Origin: Macrostomum lignano
Lineage: Eukaryota
Direction of reading: 5' to 3'
NCBI GenBank assembly: GCA_002269645.1
Contig: NIVC01001575.1
Location: 162,691-226,690, forward strand
DNA: 64,000 bases
Positions 961 to 54,234 of this stretch are shown here, piece by piece. The notes under the pieces were generated by a model. It saw nothing but the letters and a program-made list of their open reading frames with translations. It was not told the origin of the DNA and made no database searches. Both the position numbers and the translations under genes were made by a program. The number at the start of each line of letters is the position of its first letter. Position 1 is the stretch's first letter.

Positions 961-3201
961 CTTAGATGACAAGCTGTTCAGTCATTTGTAGGTTAAAGGT
1001 TAAAGCATGCCATTAAAATTTGCAATAAACTAGATTAAATTTATTTTTATATTTTTCTTTAAAACCAATTTGTCCAATGTCTTAATAGACTTCATTTTTG
1101 CCTCTAAATTGGTGCTTTCTGTCATATTGCTATACTGCTATACTGCCTCTATATTCAGACTATATAAGGTCTTCTTCTTAAGCTAGTTGAACACAGATAG
1201 CATTAAGCTTTTCTGTTTTCTAATTGACATTAATGCTGATTTTAGCAGTAAGATTAGTAATAATCTTTGAATAGGTAGCTTCAAAAAAGTCAGTCTTATT
1301 AATTGAATAGATAGTAAAAGGCACATAGGTAAATCTTTTGTCACTTGAAGAGTAAAGAAGTAAATTAGAGCCTAACTTACTTTATTAAATGCTAGTATAT
1401 CACCTAGGCACTGAAAAGGAAATAAGGAAAAAGCAAGTCATTGTATAGTTTAACAATTTTTTTCAAAGTTGCAAAAAAGTAAGCTTGAGTAAAGTATTTA
1501 TTTGAATTGAGTAATAAAGAATTTATTTGACAAATCAAATCATATGAATCATATACTTATATATAATATATATATTATGTCATATACATATCATAGGAAA
1601 AATAAATCCTAGCACTGCTAACAGCCTAGAAAGTGCCCTTTATTATATTTAAAGCCTACTCATAGTCATAGACAATATCTTATATAAAATATATTCAGTA
1701 CCATCTAATGCATTATGCATACCAACCATAATAGCCATAATCCCATATACCAAAACTTTTTCCTAGAGATTGTCTTTTCCAAAAGCTAATTTTTTTTCCT
1801 TTTCTATTTTGCTAAAATTTATAAAACATTTAAGACTTTTAAGTTAAAGATCATCATTTAATCCTTAGTCAAAGTGATAATAAATCAATCAACAAATATA
1901 ATATAAAATTATAACTTGACAAAACTATTAGGCTAAGCCTAACAAGTAACTATAATATCATGTTTAGCTTTTGGGACCTATATGCTAGATATTTAGCTAA
2001 TTAGCTTTAGGTCTAGCTTAAACAAATGTATAAAAAATGTATGTATTAATACCATTAAAGATAATACATCAAGCTGATTACACTGACATTAGAATTATGT
2101 TAATATTAGGTACATTAAAATTCTATGACAACTATAATATAATATGGTAATAATGTGATTAATGAATATTTACTTAGCCTTTTTTCACTTTTAGTAAAGC
2201 CTTAAACAATTTTTATATCAAATATAAATAAAACTAAAAAGAAGTGACAAAAATTAATTGAAATTGAATAAGTCTGTTAAATAAACCCAAGAGAAATATT
2301 TGGAATTTCACCATATGGCCAGATGGCCTAAACATATTATTCCCATTTTAAATGTTTAAAATGCTTGTTTAACTTTTACCTAGTAGCTTATTAACACAAA
2401 ATTTTGATTAGTAATTCAAATTCCAATAATCTATATTTCCAATTTTGAGGGGCAAAGCTTAAATGCAATGACAGACTTAATTTATCATTTAATGTCCCAT
2501 TCTAATAGTTTTATTGACTGTTCTCTCCCACTTGCATGCCAACATGCCATTTTAAGTCCTCTAGTAACATGCTAGCAGCTTTCCCAATGGGCATTCAGCC
2601 TCTATTTTTGTAGCACACTGGCTGCTTGTCATTGTAATACTTGTTAATGTCTTAAGCACAATATAGTTATAGAAAATTGAATTCATTTATCAGAACTAAA
2701 ATTTTTCTATAACTGTCACTAATTTAATCTAAAAGAATTTGAAGCTACAGTTAATTAATATGCTTAACAAATACAGAAAAATATAATAAAAATATATAGA
2801 AAAAGATAGAAAAAACAAAGACTAAGTAGATCTTTTTATGTGAAATGGAAATTGTATTTCTGAAGGATTTTTATTTTATAGTGTATAATACAGCACCATT
2901 GTAAGAAAAAAATTCAATAATTCATCTAAAATAAAAAATCCTCAAAAGAAACTTCATCCAAGCCTTGAAGTTTATTTCAATTTCCTCATAGAGGGTTCCT
3001 TCAGTCTGGCAACATATCCACAAACTTGTGTGGCAATGTCGCTTTAGGAGAAAACAGGAAACAACATCGACAACTAAAAGAGAACAGAAAAAAAACTTGC
3101 GTTAAGTGATTGATAAGCAGCATTAAATAGTTGAATCCAAAGCGAGAAAAGATTGAAATTGCATGCAGAGCAGAGTAAACCCTGAGTGACTGTATGCCTC
3201 A

Positions 3202-6200
3202 ATGTGCCATACCCGATTCCAGGCCAAGCCAAAGTCAGCTGACCAATCAAACAAAGCCGGCAAATCATTAAAGGCCAAAGCCAAATTGGCCAAAGGTTCG
3301 TCTGGCAATGGCGTTTCTAAGAAACGCCGGCACTGGAAACAGCCGCCATCAGACAGAGGCGTTGACGAAGCTCTGGCTTTGTCTGTTGACGCCAAGTCAG
3401 TTGCTAAGCAACTGCGATCGACTGATAGGCCGCCATCCAGGGCCACCCTGCGACTGGCCACCGCCTGTCTGATGCAGTGCGTCAGGCATGTGAATAAAGA
3501 GCCGCGTGCTTTTAATAGCATTGTGCGTGTCTGCCTGCGGCACTGGGTTCGCGCCGCTGACTCTGTGCTTGGACGTACTGCTAATGATAATGATGCTGGC
3601 GATGAGCAAGAGCGAGATGATGAAGACGAAGACGCTGGATTGCGGGTATTTAATTTTCTGTTTATCACTTTTAAGCTTAAAGATAAAAAACACAAATATT
3701 TTTTTCGATGAGATACTACTCGCCACTATACTTTCACAAGAATCATTATTTTACCTAAAAATCTGCTTCATCAGAATCACTGATTGCCCTGAGAATCTGC
3801 TCCATTAGAATCACTGATCACACTGAGAATCTGCTCCATTAGAATCACTGATTGCCCTGAGAATCTGCTCCATTAGAATCACTGATCACACTGAGAATCT
3901 GCTCCATCAGAATCACTGATTGCCCTGAGAATCTGCTCCATCAGAATCACTGATTGCCCTGAGATCTGCTCCATCAGAATCACTGATTGCCCTGAGAATC
4001 TGCTCCATCAGAATCACTGATTGCCCTGAGATCTGCTCCATTAGAATCACTGATTGCCCTGAGAATCTGCTCCATTAGAATCACTGATTGCCCTGAGAAT
4101 CTGCTCCATTAGAATCACTGATTGCCCTGAGAATCTGCTCCATTAGAATCACTGATTGCCCTGAGAATCTGCTCCATTAGAATCACTGATTGCCCTGAGA
4201 ATCTGCTCCATTAGAATCACTGATTGCCCTGAGAATCTGCTCCATTAGAATCACTGATTGCCCTGAGAATCTGCTCCATTAGAATCACTGATCACACTAA
4301 GAATCTGCTCCATTAGAATCACTGATCACACTGAGAATCTGCTCCATTTGAATCACTGATCACACTAAGAATCTGCTCCATTAGAATCACTGATTGCCCT
4401 GAGAATCTGCTCCATTAGAATCACACAAACGATTCCTATCCCCTACAGACTCCTTCATCCTATCCGAGATGGGAGAAGATTCGCGTCACCTGCAAGCAGT
4501 ACCTGAACTGCGTATTGCTACTGCTAGACAAGCTCAGAGATCAGGAAGCTGTACGCGCCATCGCGCAGCACTGCCTACCATTGCTGCCCTACTTTCTGTG
4601 TCTGCCTCGCACTCTGAAGCCGCTATTAAAATCTTTGATTAGCCGCTGGAGTCAAGGCCCGGCTCCCATCACTGTGCTAGCCTTTCTAGCCTGTCATCGA
4701 GTTGTTAAATCGAGAAAGTCTCTGTGCGAACAGGCCTGCAAATGGATGCTAGCCGGCTATTTGCAGTCGGCCAGGCTAGGCGACTCAGCATTAGCCGTGC
4801 TGCAACAGCGAACCCTTTGCGAGATGCTGTTATTGCAGCCTAATTTAGCTTATAAACTGGCATTTGTGCACCTGCGCCAGTGCGCGGCCGCTCTGGGACG
4901 AGAGTCGCAACAGGGCGGCACCGGGGAGAAGAGCGGCAGAAAAACAAAGACTACTAGTAGTAGCAGCGGGTCTTTGTTGCACAAAGCGCCACTGTATGCC
5001 GGCCTGTGGCTATGGACCCGGCTGGTGGCTGCTAGCGATGAGCTCACCAGTTTGGTAAGAGTCACTTTAGTATCCACCCTAAATCACTGCAAGAATCGCC
5101 CTAAATTGCTCCAAGAATCGCCCCTAAATCACTGCAAGAATCGCCCTAAATTGCTCCAAGAATCGCCCCTAAATCACTGCAAGAATCGCCCTTAAATCAC
5201 TGCAAGAATCGCCCTTACTCGTAAATCACTGCAATAATCGCCCCTAAATCACTGTAAGAATCGCCCTAAATTGCTCCAAGAATCGCCCCTAAATTACTGC
5301 AAGAATCGCCCTTAAATCACTGCAAGAATCGCCCCTAAATCACTGCAAGAATCGCACCTAAATCACTGTAAGAATCGCCATAAATCACTAAGAATCGCCC
5401 CTGAATCACTGCAAGAATCGCCCCTAAATCACTGCAAGAATCGCCCCTAAATCACTGCAAGAATCGCCCCTGAATCACTGCAAGAATCGCCATAAATCAC
5501 TAAGAATCGCCCCTGAATCACTGCAAGAATCGCCATAAATCACTAAGAATCGCCCCTGAATCACTGCAAGAATCGCCCCTGAATCACTGCAAGAATCGCC
5601 ATAAATCACTGCAAGAATCGCCCCTAAATCACTGCAAGAATCGCACCTGAATCACTGCAATAATCGCCCCTAAATCACTGCAAGAATCGCCCCTGAATCA
5701 CTGCAAGAATCGCCATAAATCACTAAGAATCGCCCCTGAATCACTGCAAGAATCGCCCCTAAATCACTGCAAGAATCGCCCCTAAATCACTGCAAGAATC
5801 GCCCCTGAATCACTGCAAGAATCGCCATAAATCACTAAGAATCGCCCCTGAATCACTGCAAGAATCGCCCCTAAATCACTGCAAGAATCGCCCCTAAATC
5901 ACTGCAAGAATCGCACCTGAATCACTGCAAAAATCGCCCCTAAATATCTATAAACATCGCCCCTAAATATCTATAAACATCGCCCCTAAATATCTATAAA
6001 CATCGCCCCTAAATATCTATAAACATCGCCCCTAAATATCTATAAACATCGCCCCTAAATATCTATAAACATCGCCCCTAAATATCTATAAACATCGCCC
6101 CTAAATATCTATAAACATCGCCCCTAAATATCTATAAACATCGCCCCTAAATATCTATAAACATCGCCCCTAAATATCTATAAACATCGCCCCTAAATAT

Positions 6201-7924
6201 CTATAAACATCGCCCTTAAATATCTATAAACATCGCCCCTAAATATCTATAAACATCGCCCCTAAATATCTATAAACATCGCCCCTAAATATCTATAAAC
6301 ATCGCCCCTAAATATCTATAAACATCGCCCCTAAATATCTATAAACATCGCCCCTAAATATCTATAAACATCGCCCCTAAATATCTATAAACATCGCCCC
6401 TAAATATCTATAAACATCGCCCTTAAATATCTATAAACATCGCCCCTAAATATCTATAAACATCGCCCTTAAATATCTATAAACATCGCCCCTAAATATC
6501 TATAAACATCGCCCCTAAATATCTATAAACATCGCCCTTAAATATCTATAAACATCGCCCCTAAATATCTATAAACATCGCCCTTAAATATCTATAAACA
6601 TCGCCCTTAAATATCTATAAACATCGCCCCTAAATATCTATAAACATCGCCCTTAAATATCTATAAACATCGCCCTTAAATATCTATAAACATCGCCCCT
6701 AAATATCTATAAACATCGCCCTTAAATATCTATAAACATCGCCCCTAAATATCTATAAACATCGCCCTTAAATATCTATAAACATCGCCCTTAAATATCT
6801 ATAAACATCGCCCTAAATATCTATAAACATCGCCCCTAAATATCTATAAACATCGCCCCTAAATATCTATAAACATCGCCCCTAAACGAAGCAACAATCG
6901 GACGAACTCGCAGGTGTACCCGCTGACCCAAATACTGGAGTCTCTCTGTCGCACGCTGGCCGCTGCTCGCCACCTGCCGTTGCGGGTGCACTGCCTTCGA
7001 ATGCTGCTGCACTTGACCAGGCAGACCGGCGCCGCCACGGCGCTACTGCCTGGCGCTCTGGCGCTGCTCGATTTGGCAGATTTCAACAAAGGCGTCGCCA
7101 GTCGGGCCCTGAGCTTAGAAGGCATTACCAAGCTGAGCCAGTCGCAGCTGAAAAGCCCGTCTTTTCGAGCCGCCGTTTCGGACGTTGCCTACGAACTGCT
7201 GGCCGGCTGGGTTCGATCAGCCTGTCAGCTGACCGCCTTTCCTGAGCTCTGTCTGCCTTTAACTCGGCGATTGAAACGATTAGCAAAGGTTTGTACTGGC
7301 TTTGGGGATGCTCTGATTTGCTGTTTGCATCTGATTGATTTGTTATTCTCTGATTGGCTGTAAGAATATGCGTAAATATAAGCTATTCTCTCATTGGCTG
7401 AAAGACAAATAGCTATTCTCTTATTGGCTCGAAGGTCAATAACTGCTATTCTCTCATTGGCTGGAAGGCAGCTATTTGCTGATTGGCTGAGAGACAATGC
7501 CAAATATCCCACCCCCATATTCTTCTCTTAGGACTGCCGTTGCCGGGCAGTTGCTAAGCCGGCTGCCCAGCTCCTCCGTCTAACCATGGAAGCGGCCAGT
7601 TGGACCCGACAGCAGCGGGCCACAGTGCGCCCTATTGGCGGCGGCAACGACGTAGGCGGCATCCAAGAGGCCGACCGTCTGAACGGACGCAGCCCGTTCC
7701 AGGCCTACTACCTGCGCTATCGCTCCATGCGCCGCGAAGAATTAGCCAGAGCTAGGCCTGGCGACGACCAGGAGGTGAACGGCGAAGACGAGGATAAAGA
7801 AGAGAACGGCGAGAAGGAGCCCATGGAGGTCGCCGAGCTGCAGGATGAGGAAGAGGAACCGGAGCTGTCGGATCTGCCCTCAACTGATGAGGAAGATGAG
7901 ACCGGCGATTATGAAGAGGACTAA
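3202..7924 (+). CDS. NOC2L: Nucleolar complex protein 2 homolog
   Basis: Exons 3223-3645 (start either ATG 3202 or a mini-exon ATG 3163-3174), 4449-5054, 6914-7288, 7532-7924; all GT-AG, phase 0. Motifs AFNSIVRVCLRH, RWEKIRVTCKQYL, VYPLTQI..LPLRVHC, FPELCLP and an acidic C-tail match recalled NOC2L. 5' end uncertain. Confidence 0.9.
3739..4425 (+). repeat. 34-bp minisatellite, about 20 copies, NOC2L intron
   Basis: Unit agaatcactgattgccctgagaatctgctccatt; the first copy is degenerate. Confidence 0.95.
5077..5940 (+). repeat. About 23-bp minisatellite A, NOC2L intron
   Basis: Unit aaatcactgcaagaatcgcccct with 21-22 bp variants. Confidence 0.95.
5941..6890 (+). repeat. 23-bp minisatellite B, about 41 copies, NOC2L intron
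   Basis: Unit aaatatctataaacatcgcccct, highly homogeneous; ends about 25 nt before the acceptor. Confidence 0.95.
7340..7495 (+). repeat. Degenerate about 31-bp CCAAT-containing repeat, about 5 copies
   Basis: Recurrent gctattctctcattggctg in the last NOC2L intron. Confidence 0.7.
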
Positions 7925-11707: not shown

Positions 11708-12558
11708 CATCTATCTATGTATCTATCTATCTATTTATCCATCTATCCATCTATCTATTTATCTATGTCTGTCTATTTATCTGTCTATCAACGTGGAATA
11801 TTTATTAAAACATAATATATAATATATGTACACTAAAAATGCCTAATAGTAATGAATTTAAAGCATCCGCAACCAAAACCAATGAATGCAACAAACTAAA
11901 TAAACAGCAGTAATGGATGAACTTACAGAATACCGGATTCTACTACCGTTGGCGGATAATTAAACGGTAAACCAAAGCCAGTGAAGCAACTCACCTGCAC
12001 AAACAGCAGCGGCACAAAGGCCGAATGAAACGAGCTGAACAGGGTAGAGAACAGTATAATCTTCAATCGGCCATTGAAATCCGATTTCAACGCTTCGGTT
12101 TCGTCGCGGATTTTCTCCGGATCGCGAGAACAGCTGTGCCTGGGGCTGAAGCTGCCCTGGCCATTGGCGGCGGATGCTGAGCTTGATGTGGCACCAGAAG
12201 CTGCGGTGGCGCCGGCAGCTGCTGCTGAGGACTTTTGATGCTGCGGAGTTGACCCACCGCCGCCGCTGAGCCAGTTACGGCTCAGCAAAGTGCCAGGCAC
12301 GTGGCCATAAAAGACCAGAGCGTAAGTGATGCAGCTGCAAGATAAACCGGGTGGCCAAGGTTTATTAGTTAAAATATACTCATTGAACCTCCCATAGCAC
12401 AGCTAGGTTTCTAGAAATATGCTTAGCAGCTTAGTCTGATTAGTGAAGTACTTGTATGTACATCTGTGCATTGCTTGATAACATTATATTAATACTACTA
12501 CTGTACTACTATTACCAATATTAATACTACCTACTACTACATCACAACAACAACTACC

Positions 12559-12589
<31 letters not shown>

Positions 12590-12604
12590 ATACTACTACA
12601 ACTA

Positions 12605-12654
<50 letters not shown>

Positions 12655-12689
12655 TACTACTACTACTATTTCTACTACTACCACTACTG

Positions 12690-12726
<37 letters not shown>

Positions 12727-12845
12727 TACTACTACTACTATTTCTACTACTACTACTACTGCTTCTACTACTACTACTACTGCTTCTACTACTACTACTA
12801 CTTCTACTACTACTACTACTGCTTCTACTACTACTACTACTGCTT

Positions 12846-12893
<48 letters not shown>

Positions 12894-12956
12894 TTTCTAC
12901 TACTACTACTACTACTTCTACTACTACTACTACTATTTCTACTACTACCACTACTG

Positions 12957-12990
<34 letters not shown>

Positions 12991-13112
12991 TACTACTACT
13001 ACTATTTCTACTACTACTACTACTGCTTCTACTACTACTACTACTGCTTCTACTACTACTACTACTGCTTCTACTACTACTACTACTGCTTCTACTACTA
13101 CTACTACTGCTT

Positions 13113-13157
<45 letters not shown>

Positions 13158-13268
13158 TTTCTACTACTACTACTACTGCTTCTACTACTACTACTACTTC
13201 TACTACTACTACTACTACTAATACAATTTCTACTACTACTACTACTATTTCTACTACTACCACTACTG

Positions 13269-13305
<37 letters not shown>

Positions 13306-13472
13306 TACTACTACTACTATTTCTACTACTACTACTACTGCTTCTACTACTACTACTACTGCTTCTACTACTACTACTACTACTTCTACTACTACTACTA
13401 CTATTTCTACTACTACTACTACTACTATTTCTACTACTACTACTACTGCTTCTACTACTACTACTACTGCTT

Positions 13473-13520
<48 letters not shown>

Positions 13521-16500
13521 TTTCTACTACTACTACTACTGCTTCTACTACTACTACTACTTCTACTACTACTACTACTACTACTAATACAATTTCTACT
13601 ACTACTACTACTATTTCTACTACTACTACTACTTCTACTACTACTACTACTACTAATACAATTTCTACTACTACTACTACTATTTCTACTACTACTACTA
13701 CTTCTACTTCTACTACTACTACTACTACTACTATTTCTACTACTACTACTACTACTGCTGCTACTAAGATGCGACTACTAAAGCTCACGGATAAACCAGC
13801 AGTATGCAGTAGAGCAGCGAGGTCCTGCAGTACACAAAGTAGCTCATCCAGCAGAAAAGCGCCGCCCAACAACAAGACAGCGCGCATAGCAGGGCCAGAC
13901 AGGCAGTGAAGCAGCATCTGTTAGGGATGCTTTTAAGCTGCCGGAACAGAGTTAGCAGCAGCGGCAGGCACAGCATTGAGACCAGGTACCCGACCAGCTT
14001 GTAGTCGATAAGACGAAAATTCTGTAGAGGGGGTTTGACAGGTTAACCGCAAGTTTTGCAATCAAATTTATCTACCATTTATCTTTATCTTCATTTATCT
14101 ACCACATTTGCACATTAGTTGTACTTTTGTAATGCAGATAGAACATGCCGACAAAGAAGGGCACCCAACACCCAAGAGACAGGGGCGCCCACCTAAGAGA
14201 CAGGGGCGCCCACCTGAGAGGACAGGGGCGCCCACTTGAGAGGACACGGGCGCCCACCTGAGAGGACAGGGGCGCCCACCTGAGAGGACAGGGGCGCCCA
14301 TCTGAGAGACAGGGGCGCCATCTAAGAGACAGGGGAGCCCTCCTAAGAGACAGGAGCGCCCACCTAAGAGACAGGAGCGCCCACCTAAGAGACAGGAGCG
14401 CCCACCTAAGAGACAGGAGCGCCCACCTAAGAGACAGGGGAGCCCTCCTAAGAGACAGGAGCGCCCAACTAAGACAGGCGCGCCCACCTAAGAGACAGGA
14501 GCGCGCACCGGAGAGGACAGGGGCGCCCACCTGAGAGGACAGGACGCCCACCGGAGAGGACAGAGGCGCCCACCTGAGAGACAGGCGCGCCCACCTGAGA
14601 GACAGGCGCGCCTACCTGAGAGACAGGGGTGCCGTGCCAATTTAAGAGAGAGGGGTGCCCTCCTGAGAGACAGGCGCGCCTACCTGAGAGACAGGGGTGC
14701 CGTGCCAATTTAAGAGAGAGGGGTACCCTCCTGAGAGACAGGGGCGCCCAGCTAAGAGACAGCCAGGTGGATAACGAGGCAGTGATAAAAAAAGGAACAA
14801 AACTACATAATGTACTTACAATGGCATACTGATGATGCGAATTAGGCAGCCACCAGGTTGTCTTGTACAGGTGAATGTACTGCAGTGACATACAGCTGAA
14901 GCTGAAGAACAGCATAAAAACTGAAAATGGCAGCTCGCTATCAGCTGGAATATGAGGAATCCTGGCGTGCTTCGGCTGCACCAGCAAAGTTGCTGAGCTG
15001 GCTGACTGGTTGCTATGAGGCGAATTGTCATCTCCGGCACTGAGTGGAATTGGTTGTTCATATTTATGCACATGATTTTAATTTTTTTAATTTTTAATTT
15101 TAATTTTTGTTTGTAGTTAATTTCTTTTGCAGAGTAACACATAGTTTATCTGGCCTTTTTTTCCAAATATTTAAAAACAGACAAAGTGATTAGTTTCAAG
15201 ATTTAAGGCCCTAGACAAAGTAAGTTATAAAACTTGACTAGAAAACAGCTCATTTGCTAAATGCTTATATAAGGCTTGAAAAGAGTTTTTAAGATGCCAA
15301 GGCTGAAAGGAGATACTGATATCTTAGGCTAAATAGCTGGCTTTCTACAAATTTCTACAAATAAGAAGTCTGACAATAGTGACAGTAAAATGCTTTCTAT
15401 ATAATTTTATCTTTTTTCTTAAAAAGAAAAAAACCCAATCTAGAAGGTTATAAGATAGCTTTTTCCAATACTTTAGTTATCTAGAAATGGATCTAGATAT
15501 AGAATATAACTAATAGATGCATTTTGGTACAATTTATCAACATCTAATACTATAATATTTATAAATTCGAACATTTTAGCATATAGTCAATTAAGTAAAG
15601 GACAACTTAAAATATCATTCTGCTTGAATTTATTTAACATTTAGGCCCCTATTGCAGTCAATGGCCATTATTGCAGCATGGATTTCCCTTCAATGGGAAT
15701 TCCCTTTAATGTTGGTATAGGGCCATAGTTTAGAATACACTGAATGTATGCCAGACTAAAATCTTGCAGTTTATTTGGTATGTAACAGGGTTTATTCCTC
15801 TGTCTTTATGAACAATCCCACCGCTGGTACCAAAGTTGTAATAGTGGTTATTGTTCTCTCTAGTAAATCCTATCACTAAGTCACCAAGTTGTTACAGGCG
15901 TTTTGGCTCTCTATGAAATTATCCCACTGCTGCAACCAAGTTGTCAAAGGGCTGATTCTTCTGTCTCTTCAGATGATTCCACAGCTATCACTAAAGTTGT
16001 CAAAGGGCTAAACTCCTGTTTTTATAAATGTTGGTAGCTGCCACCAAGACTATTCTATTAATAAATTATGAGTTTATTTATCTTAGAATAAGTCTGAGAA
16101 TATTTATTAGAATAGGTCTGAGTATTTAGTCTGAGTATTATTCTTAGAAAACTATTAGCCCTGAAAGATTTTACTCCTCTGTTATTCTGGTAGCATTCTA
16201 TTTAATAATTTGGCCTGAGCAGTATTTTGGCTTACTGGTATATGTATTCTATGTACTTTGCAAGTCCTTGGGCGTTACCAAGATCAGAGGGTCACAGCCT
16301 CCGGTTATGTATTGACTTCGGATCTACTTTGTATCCTGATTGCAGCGCATGGGCATTTTGGCGGACGGCGTCCGGCGCGGATCTAATACGGCGCGGCGCG
16401 GCGCATACGGCGCGGCGTGGCGCGTACGGCGCGCGGCAATTAGTACGGCGCGGCGCGGTACTAATTAGATGCCGAGGCATTTAGGCTTGATAAGACAGTC

Positions 16501-17901
16501 ATAGTTACTCCTGCCGTTTACCCAAAACTGCGTTAATTTTGCTTTAGGGTTTCTTTCACAGGTAAGTCATTTCACAGCGTGGCGCAGGTTGTGTAGGCGT
16601 CTGGCGTACTTAAGCCATGCGCTGCAATAGGGCTTTGTATCCTCTTATTACTTCCACTTCTCAGTAATATATACTGTATATGCTTTGGTCTACTTCACTC
16701 TTACTTTGTGAAAGGAATTAATGCAGAAAACACTTCTTCAATTCTTATTTTCTCGGAACTTTTACTATTTGTTATCAACTATTTTGTTAGTGAACCTCGG
16801 TGCACAAGGTTGTCTTCTCCTCTGCTGAAATTGCTTCTATTTATACTAAAATTTGCTACAGTTTTAAACAAAAATTTGTTAGTGCAAAATATTGTAGAAA
16901 ATACAAGTATTAAAACAAAATATGTTTCTTAGTTTTGGCGTGAATTCAAATTGACTAAATGGTGACTATTTTATAAAGAAATCGGGAGGGGCCCTGCACA
17001 GGTATGCCAGTGTTTTTTTTCCAACCTTTTCCAACCCAGAAAAAATGAGGCTCATTACAAGCTTCATTTGTGATGTTGCAATGCACCAAAATACCTTTTT
17101 TTGCTTCTTTGTTTCACTTTTTAGCTTTTTTTGCTGATATTCTTTATAGCAGGAAGTCAATACATGCCAAGATTTCTTTCATTCTTTCAAAGTAATTACT
17201 TTCCTTTTAAAATTTACTTTTATTTCACAATTTGATTCTGCAACTGCAGGAACATGTACGTCACTTTTTCACTATCCATTTTTATATGCCAGATAGTATG
17301 CCAGATTTCAAAAAAAAAATTTGTACACCAAGTGTATGCCAAAAGTCCTGAGTGTAGGCAGGCATATGCCAGCGAGATTAATCCGGCGTACTACCCCTCT
17401 TCTGGACTTTGAGTATAGGACGCTTTTTAATTTCTTTTTTAAATTTATATTAAATATAATTTGTAAAAACTATATAATGAAAACTAATTATGCATTAATA
17501 ATTTTATGGCTATAATTTTATGGGCTCATAAGTATAAACAGATACCTGTTAATAGTTTTAGAAAATGGTTAGCCTAATTAATAGATAAACAATTTATATA
17601 TGACTATGAGCATTAACATATGGTCTTACTAGCACTAGGCATTATATTTTTAACTCAAGTTTAAACACCATTAGCATCAGTAAAAGTTTCCCTTGTCTAA
17701 ATCAGCTTTTTTATCAGCTTGACTACAAAAGCATTTTTGCTCAATGAGTCTACAAGATTAAGTCTATAGTCAACTTCTCTAAAATGACAAAAATAGTTTA
17801 TTACAAAAAAATTGTAACGAGCTCTGGACATAGCAGTTTTTTACCAATACTTACACGTATGAATGTGATATGCGCGATATATTGCGTTTTATCGCAGGCA
17901 T
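8587..17901 (-). CDS. TMEM39: Transmembrane protein 39 (TMEM39A/B-like), about 458 aa
   Basis: Exons 17855-17901 (MPAIKRNISR), 14820-15039, 13789-14021, 11995-12334, 9526-9729, 8587-8919; phases consistent, total 1377 nt. Motifs LQYIHLYKTTWWLP, NFRLIDY, LKSDFNGRLK, LHRCALHLGCW, WQQGALVKH, HSRFHSLF match recalled TMEM39A. Confidence 0.9.
9004..9465 (+). repeat. 17-19-bp GC-rich minisatellite, about 25 copies, last TMEM39 intron
   Basis: Unit gcgccagctacagaggg(g/a). Confidence 0.95.
10205..10740 (+). repeat. About 107-bp dimeric tandem repeat, 4-5 copies
   Basis: Alternating subunits of about 45 and 61 bp, both containing agccaat(g/a)agagagcagtaagg. Confidence 0.9.
11620..11790 (+). repeat. 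(ATCT)n microsatellite
   Basis: Direct reading. Confidence 0.95.
12490..13765 (+). repeat. Degenerate (TAC)n trinucleotide array, about 1.27 kb, TMEM39 intron
   Basis: TAC repeats with in-register TTC/TGC/TTT variants; lies between exons 13789 and 12334. Confidence 0.95.
14170..14765 (+). repeat. About 21-22-bp GC-rich minisatellite, TMEM39 intron
   Basis: Unit acaggggcgcccacctgagagg and variants. Confidence 0.9.
15815..16050 (+). repeat. Old degenerate tandem repeat, period about 53 bp
   Basis: Recurrent cca(a)agttgt(c)aaagggc-like blocks at roughly 53-bp spacing. Confidence 0.45.
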
Positions 17902-18552
17902 CGTCTGTTTGACCAAGACAATAAAATTAAGAAACTTCTGAGTCCTGAAACTATTAATGTACAAGTACAAAGTAGTAGTCACAACCACTAGTTAGATTTA
18001 TTTTATATTAAGTCTTGACAAAGTCGCAAAAGTACAACATAACTAGGAGGTACAATGCTGAAACTCAGACAAAGTAATTGAGTTTTTGCTAGCTATTATT
18101 TATTTATTGATTATTGTTTTTTATTTTAGGCACTAAGATATCGAAATTGATTGTTCTTAGAAACATCGAACTTAAATTGCTGCTTCCGACAATTTATAAA
18201 AATTAGTGCATATCTAAACAAAAAATAAATTAATAACACACATGGTATACATAAAACATATTGAAAGCAAAAGTTTTTTTAACGGCGTAAAAGTTTATCT
18301 CTCTTGACCGAAAAAATACTGTACGCTTTTATGCGAGTGTATGTCTGACATTTAAGAGCCCGATCCCCGATGTGCCTGAGAACTGTATGGAAAATTTATA
18401 TTGCGCCAGTCTGGAATCAAGTATTTTAGTAGTTTTTAACAAATAAATAATGCAGTGGCAAACAGAATTAGCTACACAGAAATGACGTTAAGAGTTATTG
18501 ATGTTCAAATCTGTCTGAAAGTATGACAGGTAAAAGTCAATTACCGTAACAA

Positions 18553-18600
18553 GGAAAAATCAAGGACTTCTAGACTAGTCTAGAAGTCCTTGGGAAAAAT
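18553..18600. mobile_element. 32-bp perfect palindrome flanked by perfect 8-bp direct repeats (micro-MITE or footprint)
   Basis: caaggacttctagactagtctagaagtccttg (18561-18592) equals its own reverse complement; ggaaaaat at 18553-18560 and 18593-18600. Confidence 0.75.
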
Positions 18601-19384
18601 GAAATCAATAATCAAACACGCTATAATTTGTTAGTCGTACCAATTCGAGAATGTATACTTGGTCACATAACTCTAATGCATGCTGGACTTAGTGTATTTT
18701 TGAGTCGCACAAACAATTAAGTTAAATTTAAAAAAGCTAAATAAGGATCACGAGCTAGTTACGATAAACCTTGCAGAAGTTAGCTGCTAAGAAAACAAAA
18801 GAGGGGTACCTATAAATACTTACTCAGGTAAACGGGAAAAACAATTATTAATCAATAATTGCAGAGAAGCTAACAAAAAAACAGGCAAGATTGTGCAAAT
18901 TAGTAATATCTAAGGGCAAAGTGCACAGAAGCATGCAGTTAGAAAGCAAAGCAAGCAGATAAAGTGGATGATAAGTGAGGAAATAAATAAGCAAGCAGTT
19001 ATTTAGCATTATATTTGAACAATATTACAAATTACAACAGCAAAGTAAGTGGGGAAATAAAACAACAAATTGCTATTTGCAGAAACAGAAATGAGATATA
19101 GATAAAAACATGAACTATTTGTTCAAAAAAAGTATTGGGCCAACAAGCGGTGTATTTTAATGTTGATTGGCTTAAATAAAATATTACCATTAAAAACCAA
19201 ATATTGAAAGAATCAAGTAGAAAACGCCAACTCTGCAATAGGCAGACTATGGAAAAAGTTCCACTGACAAAATTTATTCTCAGACTTGGAATTTGAAGAA
19301 AAACTGTGTTGATAAATTAAACAAAGTTTATTACATTATTCGCCTACTAACAGTAGGCTAATCGTGACATCTTACAAATCAGAT

Positions 19385-19885
19385 TAGAGTGAGACAGAGA
19401 TAGACCAGACTGAGACAGAGATAGACCAGACTGAGGCAGAGATAGACCAGACTGAGAGAGAGATAGACCAGACTGAGGCAGAGATAGACCAGACTGAGAG
19501 AGAGATAGACCAGACTGAGACAGAGATAGACCAGACTGAGAGAGAGATAGACCAGACTGAGACGGAGATAGACCAGACTGAGGCAGAGATAGACCAGACT
19601 GAGAGAGAGATAGACCAGACTGAGACAGAGATAGACCAGACTGAGAGAGAGATAGACCAGACTGAGACGGAGATAGACCAGACTGAGGCAGAGATAGACC
19701 AGACTGAGACGGAGATAGACCAGACTGAGGCAGAGATAGACCAGACTGAGACGGAGATAGACCAGACTGAGACGGAGATAGACCAGACTGAGACGGAGAT
19801 AGACCAGACTGAGGCAGAGATAGACCAGACTGAGACGGAGATAGACCAGACTGAGACGGAGATAGACCAGACTGAGACGGAGATA
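19385..19885 (+). repeat. 21-bp minisatellite, about 24 copies, just 3' of the LOTUS-only ORF
   Basis: Unit agagatagaccagactgag(a/g)c. Confidence 0.95.
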
Positions 19886-19906
19886 GACAGGCCACAAAAA
19901 TCTAAC

Positions 19907-20323
19907 CTAAGCCGCTGGGGCAGGACTAAACGGATCTAAAACGGGCGGCGGCGGCGGCGGCGGCGGTGGCGGAGGCGGCGGTCGCCTCGGTCGCTCGGCC
20001 CGAATCAGACTGACAATATGAGCAGTCCTGGGAGTGACAACTCCGTGACAGACAATCCGACGACCTGAGACCTCAATTTGGACAACGTGCGGCAGAGACT
20101 CCAGATATTGGCGCAGATTGGCGTATTGACCGCCGAAGCTCCAGTCTAGCGGTCGATGGCACAGTCGTAAATATTGCCGTTCAAGCGACGGCAGAGGGAC
20201 ACCCCGTCGAGCTGATAACAGAACAGCCCTAAGTTGGCTCTCCTGTTCAAGGATACGAGCGTGCTGCTGCTGCCGTTCCGCGTCTGGAACTGGCGCCGCT
20301 TCCACTGCCGCCGCTTGAGCCAT
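19907..20323 (-). CDS. Stand-alone eLOTUS (OST-HTH) domain protein with poly-Pro tail, about 138 aa
   Basis: ATG 20323. EQESQLRAVLLSARRGVPLPSLERQYLRL...LRQYLESLPHVVQIE...CHGVVTPRTAHIVSLIRAER parallels the recalled TDRD7/TDRD5 N-terminal LOTUS (LRAVLQSHKNGVALPRLQGEY...LEAYLRSVPAVVRIE...TETARIAQLVARQR). Confidence 0.8.
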   Translation of the reverse strand: MAQAAAVEAAPVPDAERQQQHARILEQESQLRAVLLSARRGVPLPSLERQYLRLCHRPLDWSFGGQYANLRQYLESLPHVVQIEVSGRRIVCHGVVTPRTAHIVSLIRAERPRRPPPPPPPPPPPPPVLDPFSPAPAA

Positions 20324-20443
20324 GCAAAATATAGGCAATTTCACTTGCTATTAGGCATTTCACAGATTGGAAACTACTATAAGTAGAAAGAATGCGATGC
20401 GAAACTAACTATGATTACAACATTCAATGTTTGTGTGATGAGA

Positions 20444-20885
20444 CTGACTGACTGACTAACTGACTGACTGACTGACTGACTGACTGACTGACTGACTGAC
20501 TGACTGACTGACTGACTGACTGACTGACTGACTGACTGACTGACTGACTGACTGACTGACTGACTGACTGACTGACTGACTGACTGACTGACTGACTGAC
20601 TGACTGACTGACTGACTGACTGACTGACTGACTGACTGACTGACTGACTGACTGACTGACTGACTGACTGACTGACTGACTGACTGACTGACTGACTGAC
20701 TGACTGACTGACTGACTGACTGAGCGATTGAGTGAGAGGGTGAGCGATTGAGAGAGTGAGAGAATGAGTTAGTGAGCGAGAGTCGGTGAGTGAGTGAGCG
20801 AGAGTCGGTGAGTGAGTGAGCGAGAGTCGGTGAGTGAGTGAGTGAGAGTCGGTGAGTGAGTGAGCGACAGTCAGTGAGTGAGTGA
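20444..20885 (+). repeat. (ACTG)n microsatellite, about 69 copies, followed by degenerate GAGT repeats
   Basis: Direct reading; pure run about 20444-20722. Confidence 0.95.
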
Positions 20886-21379
20886 TCAAATAAATGAGTG
20901 ATAAGTAATTAAATAAACATTTTGAAATTTCTCAAACAGAAAAATAAACGCAAATGAAACACCACAGGAAATTTTATTTCGTTTATTAAAAAAAGGTAAT
21001 AATTGGTATAGTAATAATGATGACAGTCTGAAGATTTATTAGTATACTTTTTATATTATTATTATATAATACTCATATTTATACCTATATTTAAAACTAA
21101 TTATTTAAGAACACCGGAAAAAGAAGCTATTTAACAAAATAAACAAAAATAGTTAGGATATATAATTGGCAGTTAATATACTTTTTTCTAAAAATAAACT
21201 TATAAATCGACCTTTGCAACAGAAACTGGCAAAGATAATTATAGTTAGTAAATGCTTTATGCACACAAATTTGCACTACGCATGTACAATATTATGAAGG
21301 CGTCTTGGAGCAAATCAAATGAAATCGCATAATATTATTTTATCGAGAGTTGAATAAACCACTCGCTAGCCAATCAAAA

Positions 21380-21845
21380 AATTGCATATCTTATCAAACT
21401 TTCTTTATCAGCCAATCAGAGAATCACAAATCTTATCTAACTTTCTTTATCAGCCAATTAGAGAATCGCATGTCTTATCTAACTTTCTACATCAGCCAAT
21501 GAGAGAATCGCAAGTCTTATCTAACTTTCTACATCAGCCAATCAGAGAATCGCAAGTCTTATCTAACTTTCTACATCAGCCAATCAGAGAATCGCATGTC
21601 TTATCTAACTTTCTACATCAGCCAATCAGAGAATCGCTTGTCTTATCTAACTTTCTTTACCAGCCAATCAGAGAATCGCATGTCTTATCTAACTTTCTTC
21701 ATCAGCCAATCAGAGAATCGCATGTCTTATCTAACTTTCTTCATCAGCCAATCAGAAAAATCGCATATCTTATCTAACTTTCTTTATCAGCCAATCAGAG
21801 AATCGCATATCTCATCTAACTTTCTTCATCAGCCAATCAGAGAAT
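21380..21845 (+). repeat. 42-bp minisatellite, about 11 copies, each with AGCCAATCAG
   Basis: Unit atcagccaatcagagaatcgcatgtcttatctaactttcttc, between the two LOTUS genes. Confidence 0.95.
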
Positions 21846-21910
21846 CTCGTTATTTTTCCTTCATCAGATGACTTTCAGGTCAAGTTGGTTTACTATGCTC
21901 AACTGTCTTC

Positions 21911-22747
21911 TCAATTGACCAGCTCAACCAATGGCAGCAAGCCGGCAGTCTCACTGCTTTTAGTCAGCAGCCGAAAATTCCTGGCCGGCAGCCAGCCGTC
22001 ATCACTGGAACAGCCGCCAGTCAGCACCCTACTGACGCTGCGCCGCTGACACCTGACAAAACCGCAGGCTGGCGGCAAATTAGCCAATCGCAATCGAATG
22101 AAGCCAAGTTCGCGAGCCATTTGTTTTATTAAATCTTCGTTCGCCTGCCGCCTAGATAAGTGCAATATAAGGCGACACACAGGCGGCAGGCGAATCAGCT
22201 GATCTAGCTGGATTCGCTGACAGCTGCTGCTGCTGCTGTTGAATGGCCAGTCCATCAGCACAATGTCGCCTAATTCAGCCGAATAGTCCACGTCTAGCAG
22301 TCGGCATCGAGCCAGACAGCCGTCCGCTTCAACTAGATAGATTTCGTCCGATAGAATGACATCGGCTTGGCAGCGAACTCGACAGTGAAGAGCCGGCTCG
22401 GCAGTCAGGCGATTCAGTAACTGCCCGGCTTCGTCCAGTGTCGACTCAATTGAGCGGCGAAGCTCGACGATCGGGATGGTTTCTATAGCAACAAGATCTT
22501 CGGCGGCGGCCTCGTCAGAGTTCAAGAGGCGATAGCGGGCGGTAAACTGTTGGCCAGAGCGAAGCGCTGATAGGTTGATGAAGCTCGTCTCGATGAAGCC
22601 GGGAGTCTGCGGCGGCGGAGACGGCGGCATGAGCAGGTTTGGTTGCTGCTGCTGTTGCTGCTGCTGCGATGGATTTCTTGTGTAGATGTACGGCCTGCAA
22701 AGGGCAGTGTGAAAATACAGGCGCAAAAATAGACAGACACACAGACT

Positions 22748-22803
<56 letters not shown>

Positions 22804-22855
22804 CAGACAGACAGACAATAAGACAGCCGGACAGACAGAGACACACAGACAGAAG

Positions 22856-22903
<48 letters not shown>

Positions 22904-22975
22904 CACAGACAGACAAGACAGACAGACAGACAGACAGACAGACAGGCGGACAGACAGACAGACAGACAGACAGAC

Positions 22976-23060
<85 letters not shown>

Positions 23061-23743
23061 GGCAACTCACGGCAGAGTTTGCAGCGACTCTCTGGCTGCT
23101 GCTGGTCGGGGCGGAGGCGGTGGATTTTGCGACAGCTTCGTCTTTTGAGACGGCCGCATGAGCGGCTTTGGTTGCTTCTGCTGTTGCTGGGATGGAATTC
23201 TGTAGATGTATGGGTTGCAAAGACCGGTTTGCAAATACACACTCTTGGAACGATACTTTGGCTTGAGGACAAATAAACAGATGGACAAACACACAAACAG
23301 ACGCAGACAACTCACGGTAGAGACTGTCTGGCTGCTGGTTGGGGCGGAGGCGGCGCATTTTGCGACACCTTTGCCTTCTGAGGCGGCGGCCGCCTAGAGA
23401 CGGGAGCCGAGCCCGCGCCCCTGTTTCGCTTTCGCTTTTTATTAGACTTCTGCTTGTTGATCAGTTCCACAATAGCGCGAGAGGACTCCGTGACCACGCC
23501 GAAGCACCTGTAGCCGCCGCTGGACATTGGGTCCCGGCTGAGTCGGACCACATGCGGCAGGCCGGAAAGGTACTCCAGCAGAGTGCCCCGGCCTTGAAGG
23601 TCGAGCTGTTTTGAAGCCAGTACGCGATAATCTCTGAGCACTTCGCCAAGAGGCACGCCCTCCTTTGACGAGAGCAGCAGACAGCGGAGATTTACTTCTT
23701 GTTCTTCCTGGAATGCCAGCAGCGGTGACGATTTCCGGGGCAT
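21911..23743 (-). CDS. eLOTUS plus divergent extended-Tudor protein (TDRD5/Tejas-like architecture), about 446 aa
   Basis: Exons 23316-23743, 23071-23199, 21911-22694 (phase 2-2-2, total 1341 nt). LOTUS: [22 protein letters not shown]...[14 protein letters not shown]...[12 protein letters not shown]. Tudor-like: [30 protein letters not shown]...[10 protein letters not shown]. Confidence 0.75.
22733..23059 (+). repeat. (ACAG)n microsatellite in the LOTUS-Tudor intron
   Basis: Direct reading. Confidence 0.95.
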
Positions 23744-23744
23744 C

Positions 23745-24273
23745 GATGAGCCACTGATGACCTAAGGGGAACTGATGACCTACTAAGGATCTCAGGGTAC
23801 TGATTACATACCTATGACCTAATTGATGACCTACTGATGAACTTAAGAGAAGCGATGACCCACTAATGACCTTAGGGGAATCGATGACCTATACTGATGA
23901 CCTTAGGGGATTCGATGACCTATACTGATGACCATAGGGGATTCGTTGACCTATACTGATGACCTTAGGCCTTAGGGGAATCGATGACCTATACTGATGA
24001 CCATAGGCCTTAGGGGAATCGATGACCTATACTGATGACCTTAGGGGATTCGATGACCTATACTGATGACCATAGGCCTTAGGGGAATCGATGACCTATA
24101 CTGATGACCATAGGCCTTAGGGGAATCGATGACCTATACTGATGACCTTAGGGGATTCGATGACCTATACTGATGACCATAGGGGATTCGATGACCTATA
24201 CTGATGACCTTAGGGGATTCGGTGACCTATACTGATGACCTTAGGGGATTCGGTGACCTATACTGATGACCTT
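23745..24273 (+). repeat. 31-37-bp minisatellite abutting the LOTUS-Tudor start codon
   Basis: Unit ctgatgaccttagggga(a/t)tcgatgacctata, with a 6-bp insertion variant. Confidence 0.9.
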
Positions 24274-25946
24274 TTTAATTAGCTAATTCAATTAACGAAG
24301 GTCCAGCTATAAAGCCAGAACCAACAAACTCGATATTTTGATTAAATTGCAAGACTTAAAAAAAATTAAATAACAAATCAAACAGTACTTTTTCAAGTGT
24401 CAATATGTACTGTCGAGGTGAAAGAATTATACTTATAAATAAATATAAATATAGCCTATTTTGATATAACTGGTTTTAGAAAACGTTCATACTTACACTT
24501 AATAAGCATATGTATTGATTAAGGTGATAACTGTGTCCAAATAATATAAGTAAGTACAAAAGGAGCACATGTACTTTAAATATCTATTTTAGACTTTAGT
24601 ACTACTACTACAGATATTATATAGTGCAATATATTAATATATAACACCATTTGATATATTTCCCACTTTGAGTAGATTTATAAATATAGAAGTGTGCTAT
24701 AAAAAGGTGCCATATAAAAGTGGATTAGAGCCAATTGTTTACTTGTGAAAAGAAATAAGTAAGTAATATAGCATCAATCGGTTGGTGCAACGATTGGCAC
24801 TGCACAGACATAAAAACAATAACCAATAGAAATAATTAATTAACAAATCTTTTACAAGTCTAAATTTTGATGGAATGTTATAAGAAATTAATAAATAACT
24901 ATTATGTGCTATCTTCAATATTAGAAAACACATCTAATCTGACTACTAACAATCGGTTATCAACGAGTAGTATGGAAAGAAAACTTACACGTCAAACAGT
25001 TATAAATTTATTATATTAGTAATATCATATTAGTATTAGAATTACCGAATAATAGTTTTTATTCACTAGAGTGTGCGAAAAACACAAAAAGTGAACACAC
25101 AGACTACTATTAGTAGATTTCTAAAGGCGCAAATTTAAACTTAAGAATAATTAAATAAAGCAATAGCAAGTGGCAAATAAAACAAAAAGCGGCTACCAAG
25201 AAACAGAACTGATGAGAAATGAAATGAGAATAGAACAAACCATAAAGCCGGCTTCATCTTGGAATGCTTTTAGAAGCAATGCCGATATTCTTCTTCAACA
25301 CTACATTCGTGCGCATATTAATAAAACTTGTTTCCGAATATTAAAATTAAAAAATTAACAAAGCATTTGTGCTGGATATCTTAACTGGCTACTGTGGAGA
25401 GTAGCCAGTGGCAAATATAACGTGAGTAAGTTGTGCTAAATATGAAAAAGATATTTGCTTTAGAAAAAAAGCTTGGAATAAAGCGTGCAATGTGCGAAAA
25501 AAATAAAGAAATTACTACTGACAACTCTATAGTTGGTAGGATAAAAAGAAAAAAATGTAATAAATGGTTATTATTTTAAGAAATTTAAGCCAAAAAGGCC
25601 TATTAAAAACAGAAATATTGTGTAAATAAAATTTAAGACCAATGTCCTTATCACACGCAAAAGAACAAAAGTGGGGAAAAGTGGAAAATCAAATATCCAA
25701 TTATTAAGTTCGTGTTTTGTGCCTATTGGTCCTAAACATTATCCAGCTAATAGAATGCTTCTAGAAACTCGTAGATTTTCTTTCCTTACATTTTTGAAAA
25801 ACTCGCGTAGAAATATCCAAAACACTCCACTAATACTACTTTAGGGAACAAGTAGCTAAATTTGCTTATATATTTTTCTAAACCATAAAAAACTCAGAAC
25901 AAGTTCATATATCCTACTGCCAGAAACGGTGCAATAAGTAGTATTT

Positions 25947-42202
<16,256 letters not shown>

Positions 42203-51338: not shown

Positions 51339-51662
51339 CTACTCGTAGTCAATTTTCAGGTCAAGGCGCAGATCTTTGCAGCGCCTGAAATAGGCCGAGT
51401 AGCTGGACAGGCCCTGAAACCAGGTCTTTACATCGTCGTTGCATCCCGGATCGCAGATGCTGGCCTCGGCTCGATTGCATTTGCACTCCTTGCCGCAGAT
51501 GTTTGTGTAGGTGAAGCTGGAGCCTTTGATTTTGCACAGCAGAACCGGATGGAAACAAGCCGGAACATTGTCGTCCTCGAGGGAAAGCTGGAAGGATGGC
51601 TCCGGCAGGACTGAAAGCAGCAGACCAAAGCACAGAAGCAGCGAGACTGTAGCAGTTTTCAT
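51339..51662 (-). CDS. Small secreted Cys-rich protein, 107 aa, family not recognised
   Basis: gtcaaaATG start; signal-peptide-like MKTATVSLLLCFGLLLSVLP; 8 Cys in the mature part; acceptor-like ttaattttttgcag upstream; AATAAA (51268-51273) about 65 nt after the stop. Confidence 0.75.
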   Translation of the reverse strand: MKTATVSLLLCFGLLLSVLPEPSFQLSLEDDNVPACFHPVLLCKIKGSSFTYTNICGKECKCNRAEASICDPGCNDDVKTWFQGLSSYSAYFRRCKDLRLDLKIDYE

Positions 51663-52419
51663 TTTGACAGTGCAGTTTTTTGCAGTTTTCCTGTTTTTAG
51701 TTAACACCGGCTGCAAAAAATTAACTAGATAGTTTCTGCTAGCTGAAGCCTGCACTGATATGTAGGCCTCTAACCAATCCTGCCTGCTGCAGTTATGCAG
51801 AGCTTTGAGGATTGGCTAAACATGTAATCAAGGGGTTTTTGCGGTTCGATCGCCATCAGCTTAGTTCTGGTTTACCAAGCAAATTGTATGGTCAGCATCT
51901 TTCTTCACTGCATCAGTCAAGATTTACTATCTATCCAGCTAGCTAAGTCAAGGCCAAGTTTTTAGCTGCACGCAAAGTAATTATAGACGCGCAGAAGATG
52001 GAGAGGAAAGGAGAAACCTGGAACTGCAATTTGTTCTTGTATTCTATCAACACTTGTAGCAAGCCTAACAGCTTACACTTCTTCACTTCCTGTGTTGGGC
52101 GAAGAATCTCGAAATTCTTGCATTTTTTACCGGACTTGCGCTACATGTACAAGATGCATGTAGAAACTGATGGTGGAAACCAGCAACGGAAGAAGTGAAA
52201 CAATGAATGCTTTTACAGTACATAAAACGCTTTGTTAAGTTATTATTTTTAAAAATATCAAATCTTTCAGTAGAGCAACGTTACGAAACTGCGAACTGCT
52301 GACGTATTTCATTTGTCTATTTACAAAAAGCTGTTAAATATGCATGTAGAAAGATAAAAATTGAATAAAATTTCCAATATCAGCACAACATTACGAGCGT
52401 ATCGATGTACACGATCTGG

Positions 52420-53435: not shown

Positions 53436-54234
53436 GCCTGCAACTTACCGTATTTTACAAACTCGAGTTTAGAAAAATAAAAGTCCGACACGGGATGGAT
53501 TGTGGGAAGAAAAAAAGAAAATGCTCGATTAGGGATAGAATTATCAGATTAAAATATAAGTATATGATCAAGGCACAAAGTGCATCGAATGAAAACTCAA
53601 GATACAAAATAAGCATAAAAGTGATGCATCAGCTATAACTTTTTCTTATAAAAAAATCAGCCGAAATAATTTTGTTCGAAAGAAAACGCCAACCAAATTA
53701 CTTACAGTAGCGTAGAATGCCTACTGAATAAGATATTGAATGAAGTGACTCGCTAATAATAAAGTAATTACAAGGGGAAATGCTGACACAGGAACTGTAT
53801 AAAACTTACAATAAAATTTAGAAGAGACTCATGTACATAATAAATCAAACAATTTACAGGACTAGATTAAATAGGTAAACCGGATACGAAAAAAGATCAT
53901 ATGTTATACTATGATATTGACAGTTTTTAAATAAAATATTCCAAGGAAATGAAACCGCGTTCAGCTGTGTAAATAATTGGATACTTTAATCGACACAGGT
54001 AACTGAAAACTGTGCAAATTTGAGATTCTTTTATAAATACGAGCTAATTTCAGCTAAAACTTACAATTAATTATGAAGCTTATAGCGAATTGAATAAAAG
54101 AATTATGAAAACACTCTCGAATGATCTAAAGCAATCATGAAGACTTTCTGGAGTAATTAAAGAAGGCATGGCTATTCACTTGTCCATGTACTAAAAATAT
54201 AATCTAAATGATGTTGGAGTGATGACCAGTTACT

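Follow-up and report, generated by a model that had tools for sequence, protein, structure and literature searches.

Organisation of the locus

The window, a 64,000-nt stretch of contig NIVC01001575.1 from assembly Mlig_3_7 of Macrostomum lignano, carries on its minus strand, according to GenBank gene calls and Pfam, a myosin VI gene (ca. 42300–25950), a LOTUS-domain gene here designated LOTUS-A (BOX15_Mlig029870g1) and Tmp39 (CDS start 17901). Between LOTUS-A and Tmp39 lies a small open reading frame (micro-ORF; Table 1), an intact frame starting with an ATG at 20323 and ending in a TAG at 19909–19907, exactly where a first-pass annotation, made from the letters alone, had placed a protein of about 138 residues. 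Positions 14000–26000 of the window match this contig with 100 % identity; by coordinate arithmetic the window covers 162691–226690 of its plus strand, and the micro-ORF corresponds to NIVC01001575.1:182597–183013. The same annotation had thought of a germline or neoblast granule module, and M. lignano is a flatworm with neoblasts; in the C-terminal tail it had counted 12 prolines, where there are 13.

Table 1. Features of the micro-ORF and of the neighbouring gene LOTUS-A, in window coordinates
Feature	Position	Strand	Basis
Micro-ORF, 138 codons plus TAG, putative stand-alone eLOTUS protein	19907–20323	-	ORF reading
Residues 1–13 (MAQAAAVEAAPVP), predicted disordered N-terminus, GC-rich like the remaining ORF	20285–20323	-	AlphaFold2 model, GC profile
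Extended LOTUS (OST-HTH) domain, residues 14–111	19991–20284	-	Pfam, profile search, AlphaFold2, Foldseek, phmmer
C-terminal extension helix (alpha5-equivalent), residues 101–109, inside T100-x-H102-I103-x-x-L106-I107	19997–20023	-	DSSP on AlphaFold2 model
Run of 13 prolines, residues 115–127, (CCG)n-type trinucleotide repeat	19943–19981	-	Repeat scan, sequence reading
TTCCAG acceptor-like motif within the micro-ORF, phase 1	20284–20289	-	Motif scan
21-bp tandem repeat, 24 copies, 503 nt, directly after the micro-ORF stop, putative 3′UTR	19386–19888		Repeat scan
Two AATAAA hexamers (19332–19327, 19278–19273), first poly(A)-signal candidates past the micro-ORF	19273–19332	-	Motif scan
LOTUS-A exon 1, LOTUS domain plus Pro-rich linker	23316–23743	-	Three-exon model, GenBank
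LOTUS-A exon 2, similar to the 3′ end of exon 1	23071–23199	-	Three-exon model
LOTUS-A exon 3, C-terminal region, ends in TGA; GTGAG at 21954–21950 (phase 1)	21911–22694	-	Three-exon model

The three-exon model of LOTUS-A (23743/23701–23316, 23199–23071 and 22694–21911) exactly reproduces the GenBank protein PAA66246.1. The apparent stop at 23314–23312 that closes the first open reading frame of the gene lies inside a CC/GTGAGT donor, and the gene ends, as had been proposed, in a stop of its own (TGA at 21913–21911), in agreement with the GenBank CDS. Its description as a LOTUS-Tudor gene was not sustained: Pfam found only a sub-threshold OST-HTH domain and no TUDOR at E ≤ 0.1, a mollusc TDRD5 used as control giving 1.8e-21, and hhalign against an alignment of seven extended-Tudor sequences returned a probability of 0.1 %. 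The AlphaFold2 model of the C-terminal 231 residues had a pLDDT of 39.7, too low for a fold search; by eye, the region gives the impression of a Tudor-like spacing, and it could conceivably be a very degenerate Tudor. These ca. 230 residues share 31 % identity with the C-terminus of Mlig011525g2, the third LOTUS gene of M. lignano, and the sequences suggest a LOTUS family specific to Macrostomum in which a divergent C-terminal module replaces a recognisable Tudor. The third gene, represented by Mlig011525g2 (P0155) and Mlig016662g1/g2 (P0003/P0004), clears the Pfam OST-HTH threshold. A tblastn search with the C-terminal exon of LOTUS-A found no second copy in the window or downstream of the micro-ORF, a weak negative result given that the frame of the query was mis-set.

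The GenBank CDS of LOTUS-A is 5′-partial and begins at 23701, seven bases after a TTCCAG (23713–23708). The ATG of a spliced leader (SL) joined at this TTCCAG would be in frame (ATG/GAA GAA CAA...), and the start codon of LOTUS-A may be donated by the SL instead of being the genomic ATG at 23743. Exon 2 and the segment 23316–23440 both end in ...QNxPPPPxPAAR... and have an identical phase-2 donor, CC/GTGAGTTG, and skipping of exon 2 preserves the frame. Before exon 3 there are two in-frame acceptors situated 18 nt apart (22695/22694 and 22677/22676).

The block formed by myosin VI, LOTUS-A, the micro-ORF and Tmp39 occurs three times in Mlig_3_7 (L001, NIVC01001611.1; L002, NIVC01001575.1; L003, NIVC01002426.1), and its copies differ chiefly in the length of the repeat arrays and by scattered substitutions. 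Over the micro-ORF and its immediate flanks the three copies are 100 % identical in nucleotide sequence, the nearest mismatches being situated more than 650 nt upstream and within the downstream repeat; between L001 and L002 there are no substitutions over more than 1 kb around the micro-ORF. The triplication and the identity around the micro-ORF fit the recent whole-genome duplication of M. lignano (PMC12147562) or, possibly, homogenisation. Tandem repeats are dense between and inside genes at 19386–24273, with arrays flanking the micro-ORF on both sides, and also, e.g., at 12484–13917, 29160–31436 and 54172–55857; they include a 21-bp unit in 24 copies, (GACT)70, a 42-bp unit in 11 copies, (AGAC)84 in an intron of LOTUS-A and a 31-bp array, and yield spurious long frames, of up to 561 aa, in a mechanical list of open reading frames. 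The window also contains a Noc2-family gene (3190–7921, plus strand; Pfam 5e-24), a WD40 beta-propeller gene (55389–58590, minus strand) and a Cys-rich ORF of 158 aa with a signal-peptide-like start (51342–51815, minus strand), for which there was no Pfam match.

Fold and conserved residues of the LOTUS domain

In the first-pass annotation, the micro-ORF product was a single LOTUS domain with its C-terminal extension helix and no Tudor, and this description holds. The OST-HTH match that it had proposed to look for with HMMER is present (PF12872, residues 28–88, 22.6 bits, E 9.6e-5), if narrowly below the gathering cut-off of 23.8; the paralogs from M. lignano score 19.9 bits (LOTUS-A) and 27–28 bits (third paralog). 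A phmmer search of the PDB with the micro-ORF alone retrieved the LOTUS1 domain of human TDRD7 (E 3e-6), TDRD5 (0.011) and the Oskar LOTUS domain (0.014–0.019), the last two with residues 27/28–112 aligned, and a profile made from the micro-ORF and LOTUS-A strengthened these matches to 9e-11 for TDRD7 and 8e-8 for TDRD5, with an alignment to TDRD5 3s93 that extends through the C-terminal helix. Pfam detected no Tudor, and the protein ends 27 residues past the LOTUS domain with only a Pro-rich tail. A Pfam match to PRIMA1 (22.9 bits versus 38.6) was rejected as compositional, being due to the polyproline run.

The AlphaFold2 model of the product (pLDDT 90.6, from an alignment of 45 sequences) predicts helices at residues 14–37, 44–55, 70–75 and 101–109, and a hairpin with strands 81–86 and 89–94, that is, a winged helix-turn-helix fold plus a C-terminal helix. 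The last predicted helix falls within TPRTAHIVSLIRAER (residues 97–111), the stretch singled out beforehand as the extension. All of the top 25 PDB matches of the model in Foldseek were LOTUS domains; the best was TDRD7 3rco (target-normalised TM-score 0.85, rmsd 1.2), and TDRD5, Tejas and the complex of Oskar LOTUS with Vasa (5nt7_A, 95 columns aligned) were also among the best.

Conservation was examined by column in 43 TDRD5/7-like relatives. R32 and G65, invariant in the family, are retained in the micro-ORF, as are L35, S37, G41, Y51, P78 and V95, which are nearly invariant. In the extension helix it shares T100, H102, I103, L106 and I107 with TDRD5/7 relatives, the corresponding columns containing T in 27, H in 36, I in 33 and L in 25 of them, and in this T-x-H-I-x-x-L-I motif it is closer to the family pattern than LOTUS-A. 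Two positions serve as criteria for extended LOTUS (eLOTUS) domains, that of Oskar L228, with a small hydrophobic residue (Ile in TDRD5/7), and that of Oskar A162, with a small side chain, Ala or Ser (Jeske 2017, PMC5458760). The L228 equivalent, established through the TDRD5/7 alignment, is I103, in a column where 33 of the 43 relatives have I and 10 have V. The A162 equivalent, deduced from alignments with TDRD5 (GLS) and TDRD7 (GVA), is Pro43; this column contains T in 13, P in 11, S in 7 and A in 4 relatives, and matches named TDRD7 from a spider, urchins and one fish have GVPL at this spot. Three family-conserved positions are altered in the micro-ORF (G56H, P60D and Q110E), of which P60D is also found in its paralogs from M. 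lignano.

The closest paralog of the micro-ORF is the LOTUS domain of its neighbour, LOTUS-A, as had been anticipated (35–41 % identity), and the two have in common the motifs LPHVV and GVVT, the L-D substitution, a Pro-rich linker after the domain, their strand and a TTCCAG just before the domain. LOTUS-A, however, has two extra exons coding for its C-terminal region, whereas the micro-ORF ends after the linker. Outside M. lignano, its nearest relatives are named TDRD5/TDRD7 proteins from spiders, molluscs, urchins and fish, and the best matches in both sequence and fold are the N-terminal eLOTUS domains of TDRD7/Tapas and TDRD5/Tejas, which share the T-x-H-I-x-x-L-[VI] helix motif. In contrast to these proteins, the micro-ORF has no Tudor and no further LOTUS domain, spans only 138 aa, carries a polyproline tail and departs from the family at H56 (G in the family), D60 (P) and E110 (Q). 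The LOTUS domain of Drosophila Oskar has the same fold, including alpha5, and shows that an eLOTUS domain can occur without a Tudor, but it is only ca. 20 % identical to the micro-ORF, and the OSK domain and LOTUS dimerisation of Oskar are not evident in the latter. The Tudor-less MIP-1/EGGD-1 and MIP-2/EGGD-2 from Caenorhabditis elegans, which recruit or activate Vasa (GLH-1), contain two LOTUS domains and long disordered scaffold regions, as opposed to one domain and a short tail. The micro-ORF probably represents a new member of this known family, truncated and reduced in its architecture.

Coding status, annotation and transcript anatomy

Among shuffles matched in composition, only ca. 1.6 % keep the frame open over 138 codons. 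Stronger evidence for coding comes from the comparison with the LOTUS exon of LOTUS-A, in which synonymous sites are saturated (pS 0.735, pN 0.42) and the gaps in the domain alignment are all in frame, without a single frameshift. Identity at codon positions 1, 2 and 3 was 0.505, 0.642 and 0.326, against random expectations of 0.30, 0.25 and 0.26, and positions 2 and 3 differed significantly (Fisher test, p = 2e-5). The conservation of positions 1 and 2 in spite of synonymous saturation indicates long-term purifying selection at the protein level; neutral drift of the micro-ORF lineage, over the time it takes third positions to saturate, would have randomised these positions too, which argues that it was protein-coding for most of its history. 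The comparison among the three copies in Mlig_3_7 is uninformative about recent constraint, because their non-coding flanks are also identical. Judged by its sequence, therefore, the micro-ORF is a genuine, unannotated and truncated eLOTUS paralog of the TDRD5/7 type that appears to be selectively maintained.

The deduced protein is absent from the GenBank proteins of Mlig_3_7, from the M. lignano entries of UniProt and from a library of 1.84 billion representative sequences. A word-indexed search for homologues of the micro-ORF gave no match, look-ups of the exact product in its 138-aa version and in a 145-aa version with a GTG start found no called gene, and there are no gene calls between LOTUS-A and Tmp39 on any of the three contigs. 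In a HMMER scan of the 1.84 billion representatives, the sole match below 1e-30 was the LOTUS-A cluster (P0001), whose members are BOX15_Mlig029870g1/g2 and Mlig011680g1, titled "hypothetical protein, partial". Transcripts overlapping repeats were filtered out of the GenBank annotation of M. lignano (PMC5730564), so the absence from GenBank is weak evidence against expression; likewise, the absence of proteins derived from Logan is uninformative, because the cluster of the expressed LOTUS-A is also without Logan members. As this locus illustrates, small genes embedded in tandem repeats can be missed by the GenBank annotation of M. lignano. Searches of the literature and supplements for Mlig029870, Mlig011680, Mlig016662 and Mlig011525 found nothing, and no papers joining "LOTUS domain" and flatworm terms were among the top matches. 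Short gene models consisting only of a LOTUS domain exist elsewhere, e.g. of 96–146 aa in mussel, scorpion and metagenomic sets, and some of them may be fragments.

Most cis donors of M. lignano have the form GT[G/A]AG, its SL acceptors follow [T/C]TNCAG and the last three bases of its 35-nt spliced leader are ATG (PMC8629364). A motif scan found no GT[AG]AG donor in the micro-ORF or onward to 19375, and the sequence following its stop codon is GTTAGA. A GC-rich block (52–87 %) spans the micro-ORF from ATG to stop, with a GC content of ca. 35 % just upstream of the ATG. The layout downstream of the micro-ORF has a parallel at the 3′ end of LOTUS-A, where the stop is followed by a 42-bp array and then by AATAAA at 21040–20978. 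The micro-ORF's own ATG and stop, the absence of donors, the AATAAA hexamers and the GC-rich block fit an independent coding unit, making a stand-alone protein plausible. The micro-ORF is situated 1.6 kb downstream of LOTUS-A on the same strand; ca. 950 nt of this gap are tandem repeats, and the repeat-adjusted distance from the LOTUS-A stop, ca. 640 nt, fits the operon spacing criterion used for M. lignano (PMC8629364). The internal TTCCAG immediately precedes the first folded residue and is the positional homologue of the TTCCAG of LOTUS-A, but SL splicing at this site would remove the only ATG of the micro-ORF and would supply an SL ATG that is out of frame.

Proposed function and alternative readings

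To our knowledge, all characterised carriers of an eLOTUS domain tether it to scaffolding parts, such as Tudor domains, OSK or long disordered regions. Activating and recruiting the germline helicase Vasa is the conserved role of these domains. In Oskar, Tejas/TDRD5 and Tapas/TDRD7, helices alpha2 and alpha5 mediate binding of the domain to the C-terminal RecA domain of Vasa, the ATPase of which it stimulates, and the extension is needed for both binding and stimulation (Jeske 2017, PMC5458760); EGGD-1 has the same effect on GLH-1, and TDRD5 on DDX4 (Price 2026, PMC12803171). As to M. lignano, a literature search retrieved papers that mention macvasa, one of which characterises the PIWI/piRNA pathway of this species.

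We propose that the micro-ORF arose by tandem duplication of the 5′ (LOTUS) part of LOTUS-A and was kept as a small protein-coding unit, with a disordered 13-residue N-terminus, an eLOTUS domain and a 13-proline tail that would derive from the ancestral Pro-rich linker. A retrocopy origin was considered unlikely, as the copy adjoins its parent, on the same strand, and comprises only the exon-1 part. Transcription might occur alone or as the downstream cistron of an SL operon with LOTUS-A, and translation would start at the micro-ORF's own ATG. By homology to other eLOTUS domains, the product would dock through helices alpha2 and alpha5 on the C-terminal RecA domain of a helicase of the Vasa/DDX4 type (Macvasa). 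Lacking the C-terminal region of LOTUS-A, it would be a soluble modulator rather than a scaffold, its most likely activity, by analogy, being binding of the Vasa C-terminal domain without the anchoring region, either activating or titrating the helicase. This reading as a whole, a selectively kept, small stand-alone gene whose expression and docking on Vasa we infer, is the one we prefer, with moderate confidence.

In some flatworms, somatic stem cells express PIWI proteins and piRNAs. A more specific proposal is that a single-domain eLOTUS protein regulates Macvasa in neoblasts or germ cells without a scaffold, as a diffusible activator or as a decoy against its granule-anchored paralog, and so tunes granule assembly, possibly from an SL operon that it shares with this paralog; the proposal is speculative and, in our estimation, improbable. 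Were it true, this nearly bare eLOTUS protein would be a natural separation-of-function tool and could show whether Vasa activation plays a biological role when anchoring is absent. Transgenesis is feasible in M. lignano.

The micro-ORF might instead be a silent or recently inactivated relic of a tandem duplication of the LOTUS exon, long functional and now unexpressed or untranslatable; it would then simply be a partial duplicate undergoing decay, in a genome that has itself been duplicated recently. Such a fate, which we consider rather unlikely, would agree with its absence from a transcriptome-based annotation and from the protein collections searched, with the weak context of its ATG (T at -3) and with an internal TTCCAG whose phase, unlike that of its homologue in LOTUS-A, does not fit the SL ATG, while the identity of the three copies, extending equally to non-coding flanks, is silent on constraint. 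The frame is nevertheless intact over its 138 codons, without frameshifts, the pattern across codon positions indicates constraint over most of its history, the family-invariant core residues are retained, and the filter on repeat-overlapping transcripts can account for its absence from the annotation. It is very unlikely that the micro-ORF is an alternative 3′ exon of LOTUS-A, spliced from the GTGAG at 21954 to the TTCCAG at 20289–20284 and producing an isoform that carries a second LOTUS domain at its C-terminus. The donor, 14 codons before the LOTUS-A stop, and the acceptor are both in phase 1, the LOTUS frame stays open across the junction (21954 to 20283), the acceptor falls exactly at the first folded residue, where the helix starts at residue 14, and the implied intron, repeat-rich and of 1.67 kb, compares with an average of 1.1–1.4 kb in M. 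lignano (PMC5730564). Agreement in phase, however, is expected by chance in one of three cases, for which reason we rated this fusion isoform low; moreover, the GenBank model stops at 21911 in all three copies, the GC-rich, coding-like block reaches 34 nt upstream of the acceptor, up to the ATG, the base at -1 of the donor is A instead of G, and the acceptor lacks a pyrimidine tract.

Finally, a stand-alone protein could be expressed and act independently of Vasa. Tracts like that of 13 prolines are a classic type of ligand for SH3, WW, EVH1 or profilin domains, and the micro-protein might contact such proline-recognition modules through its tail, or else bind G-rich or G-quadruplex RNA or another helicase. 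LOTUS domains are reported to bind G-rich and G4 RNA (PMC7498356), and the TDRD5/7-like LOTR-1 from C. elegans is reported to interact with the helicase ZNFX-1 (PMC9200344); the substitutions H56, D60 and E110, as well as Pro43, also affect conserved positions of the domain. We nonetheless judge a role apart from Vasa unlikely, given that the micro-ORF has largely preserved the eLOTUS helix motif, including the Ile equivalent to Oskar L228; in Oskar, TDRD5 and TDRD7, the conserved surface of this motif is the one that contacts Vasa.
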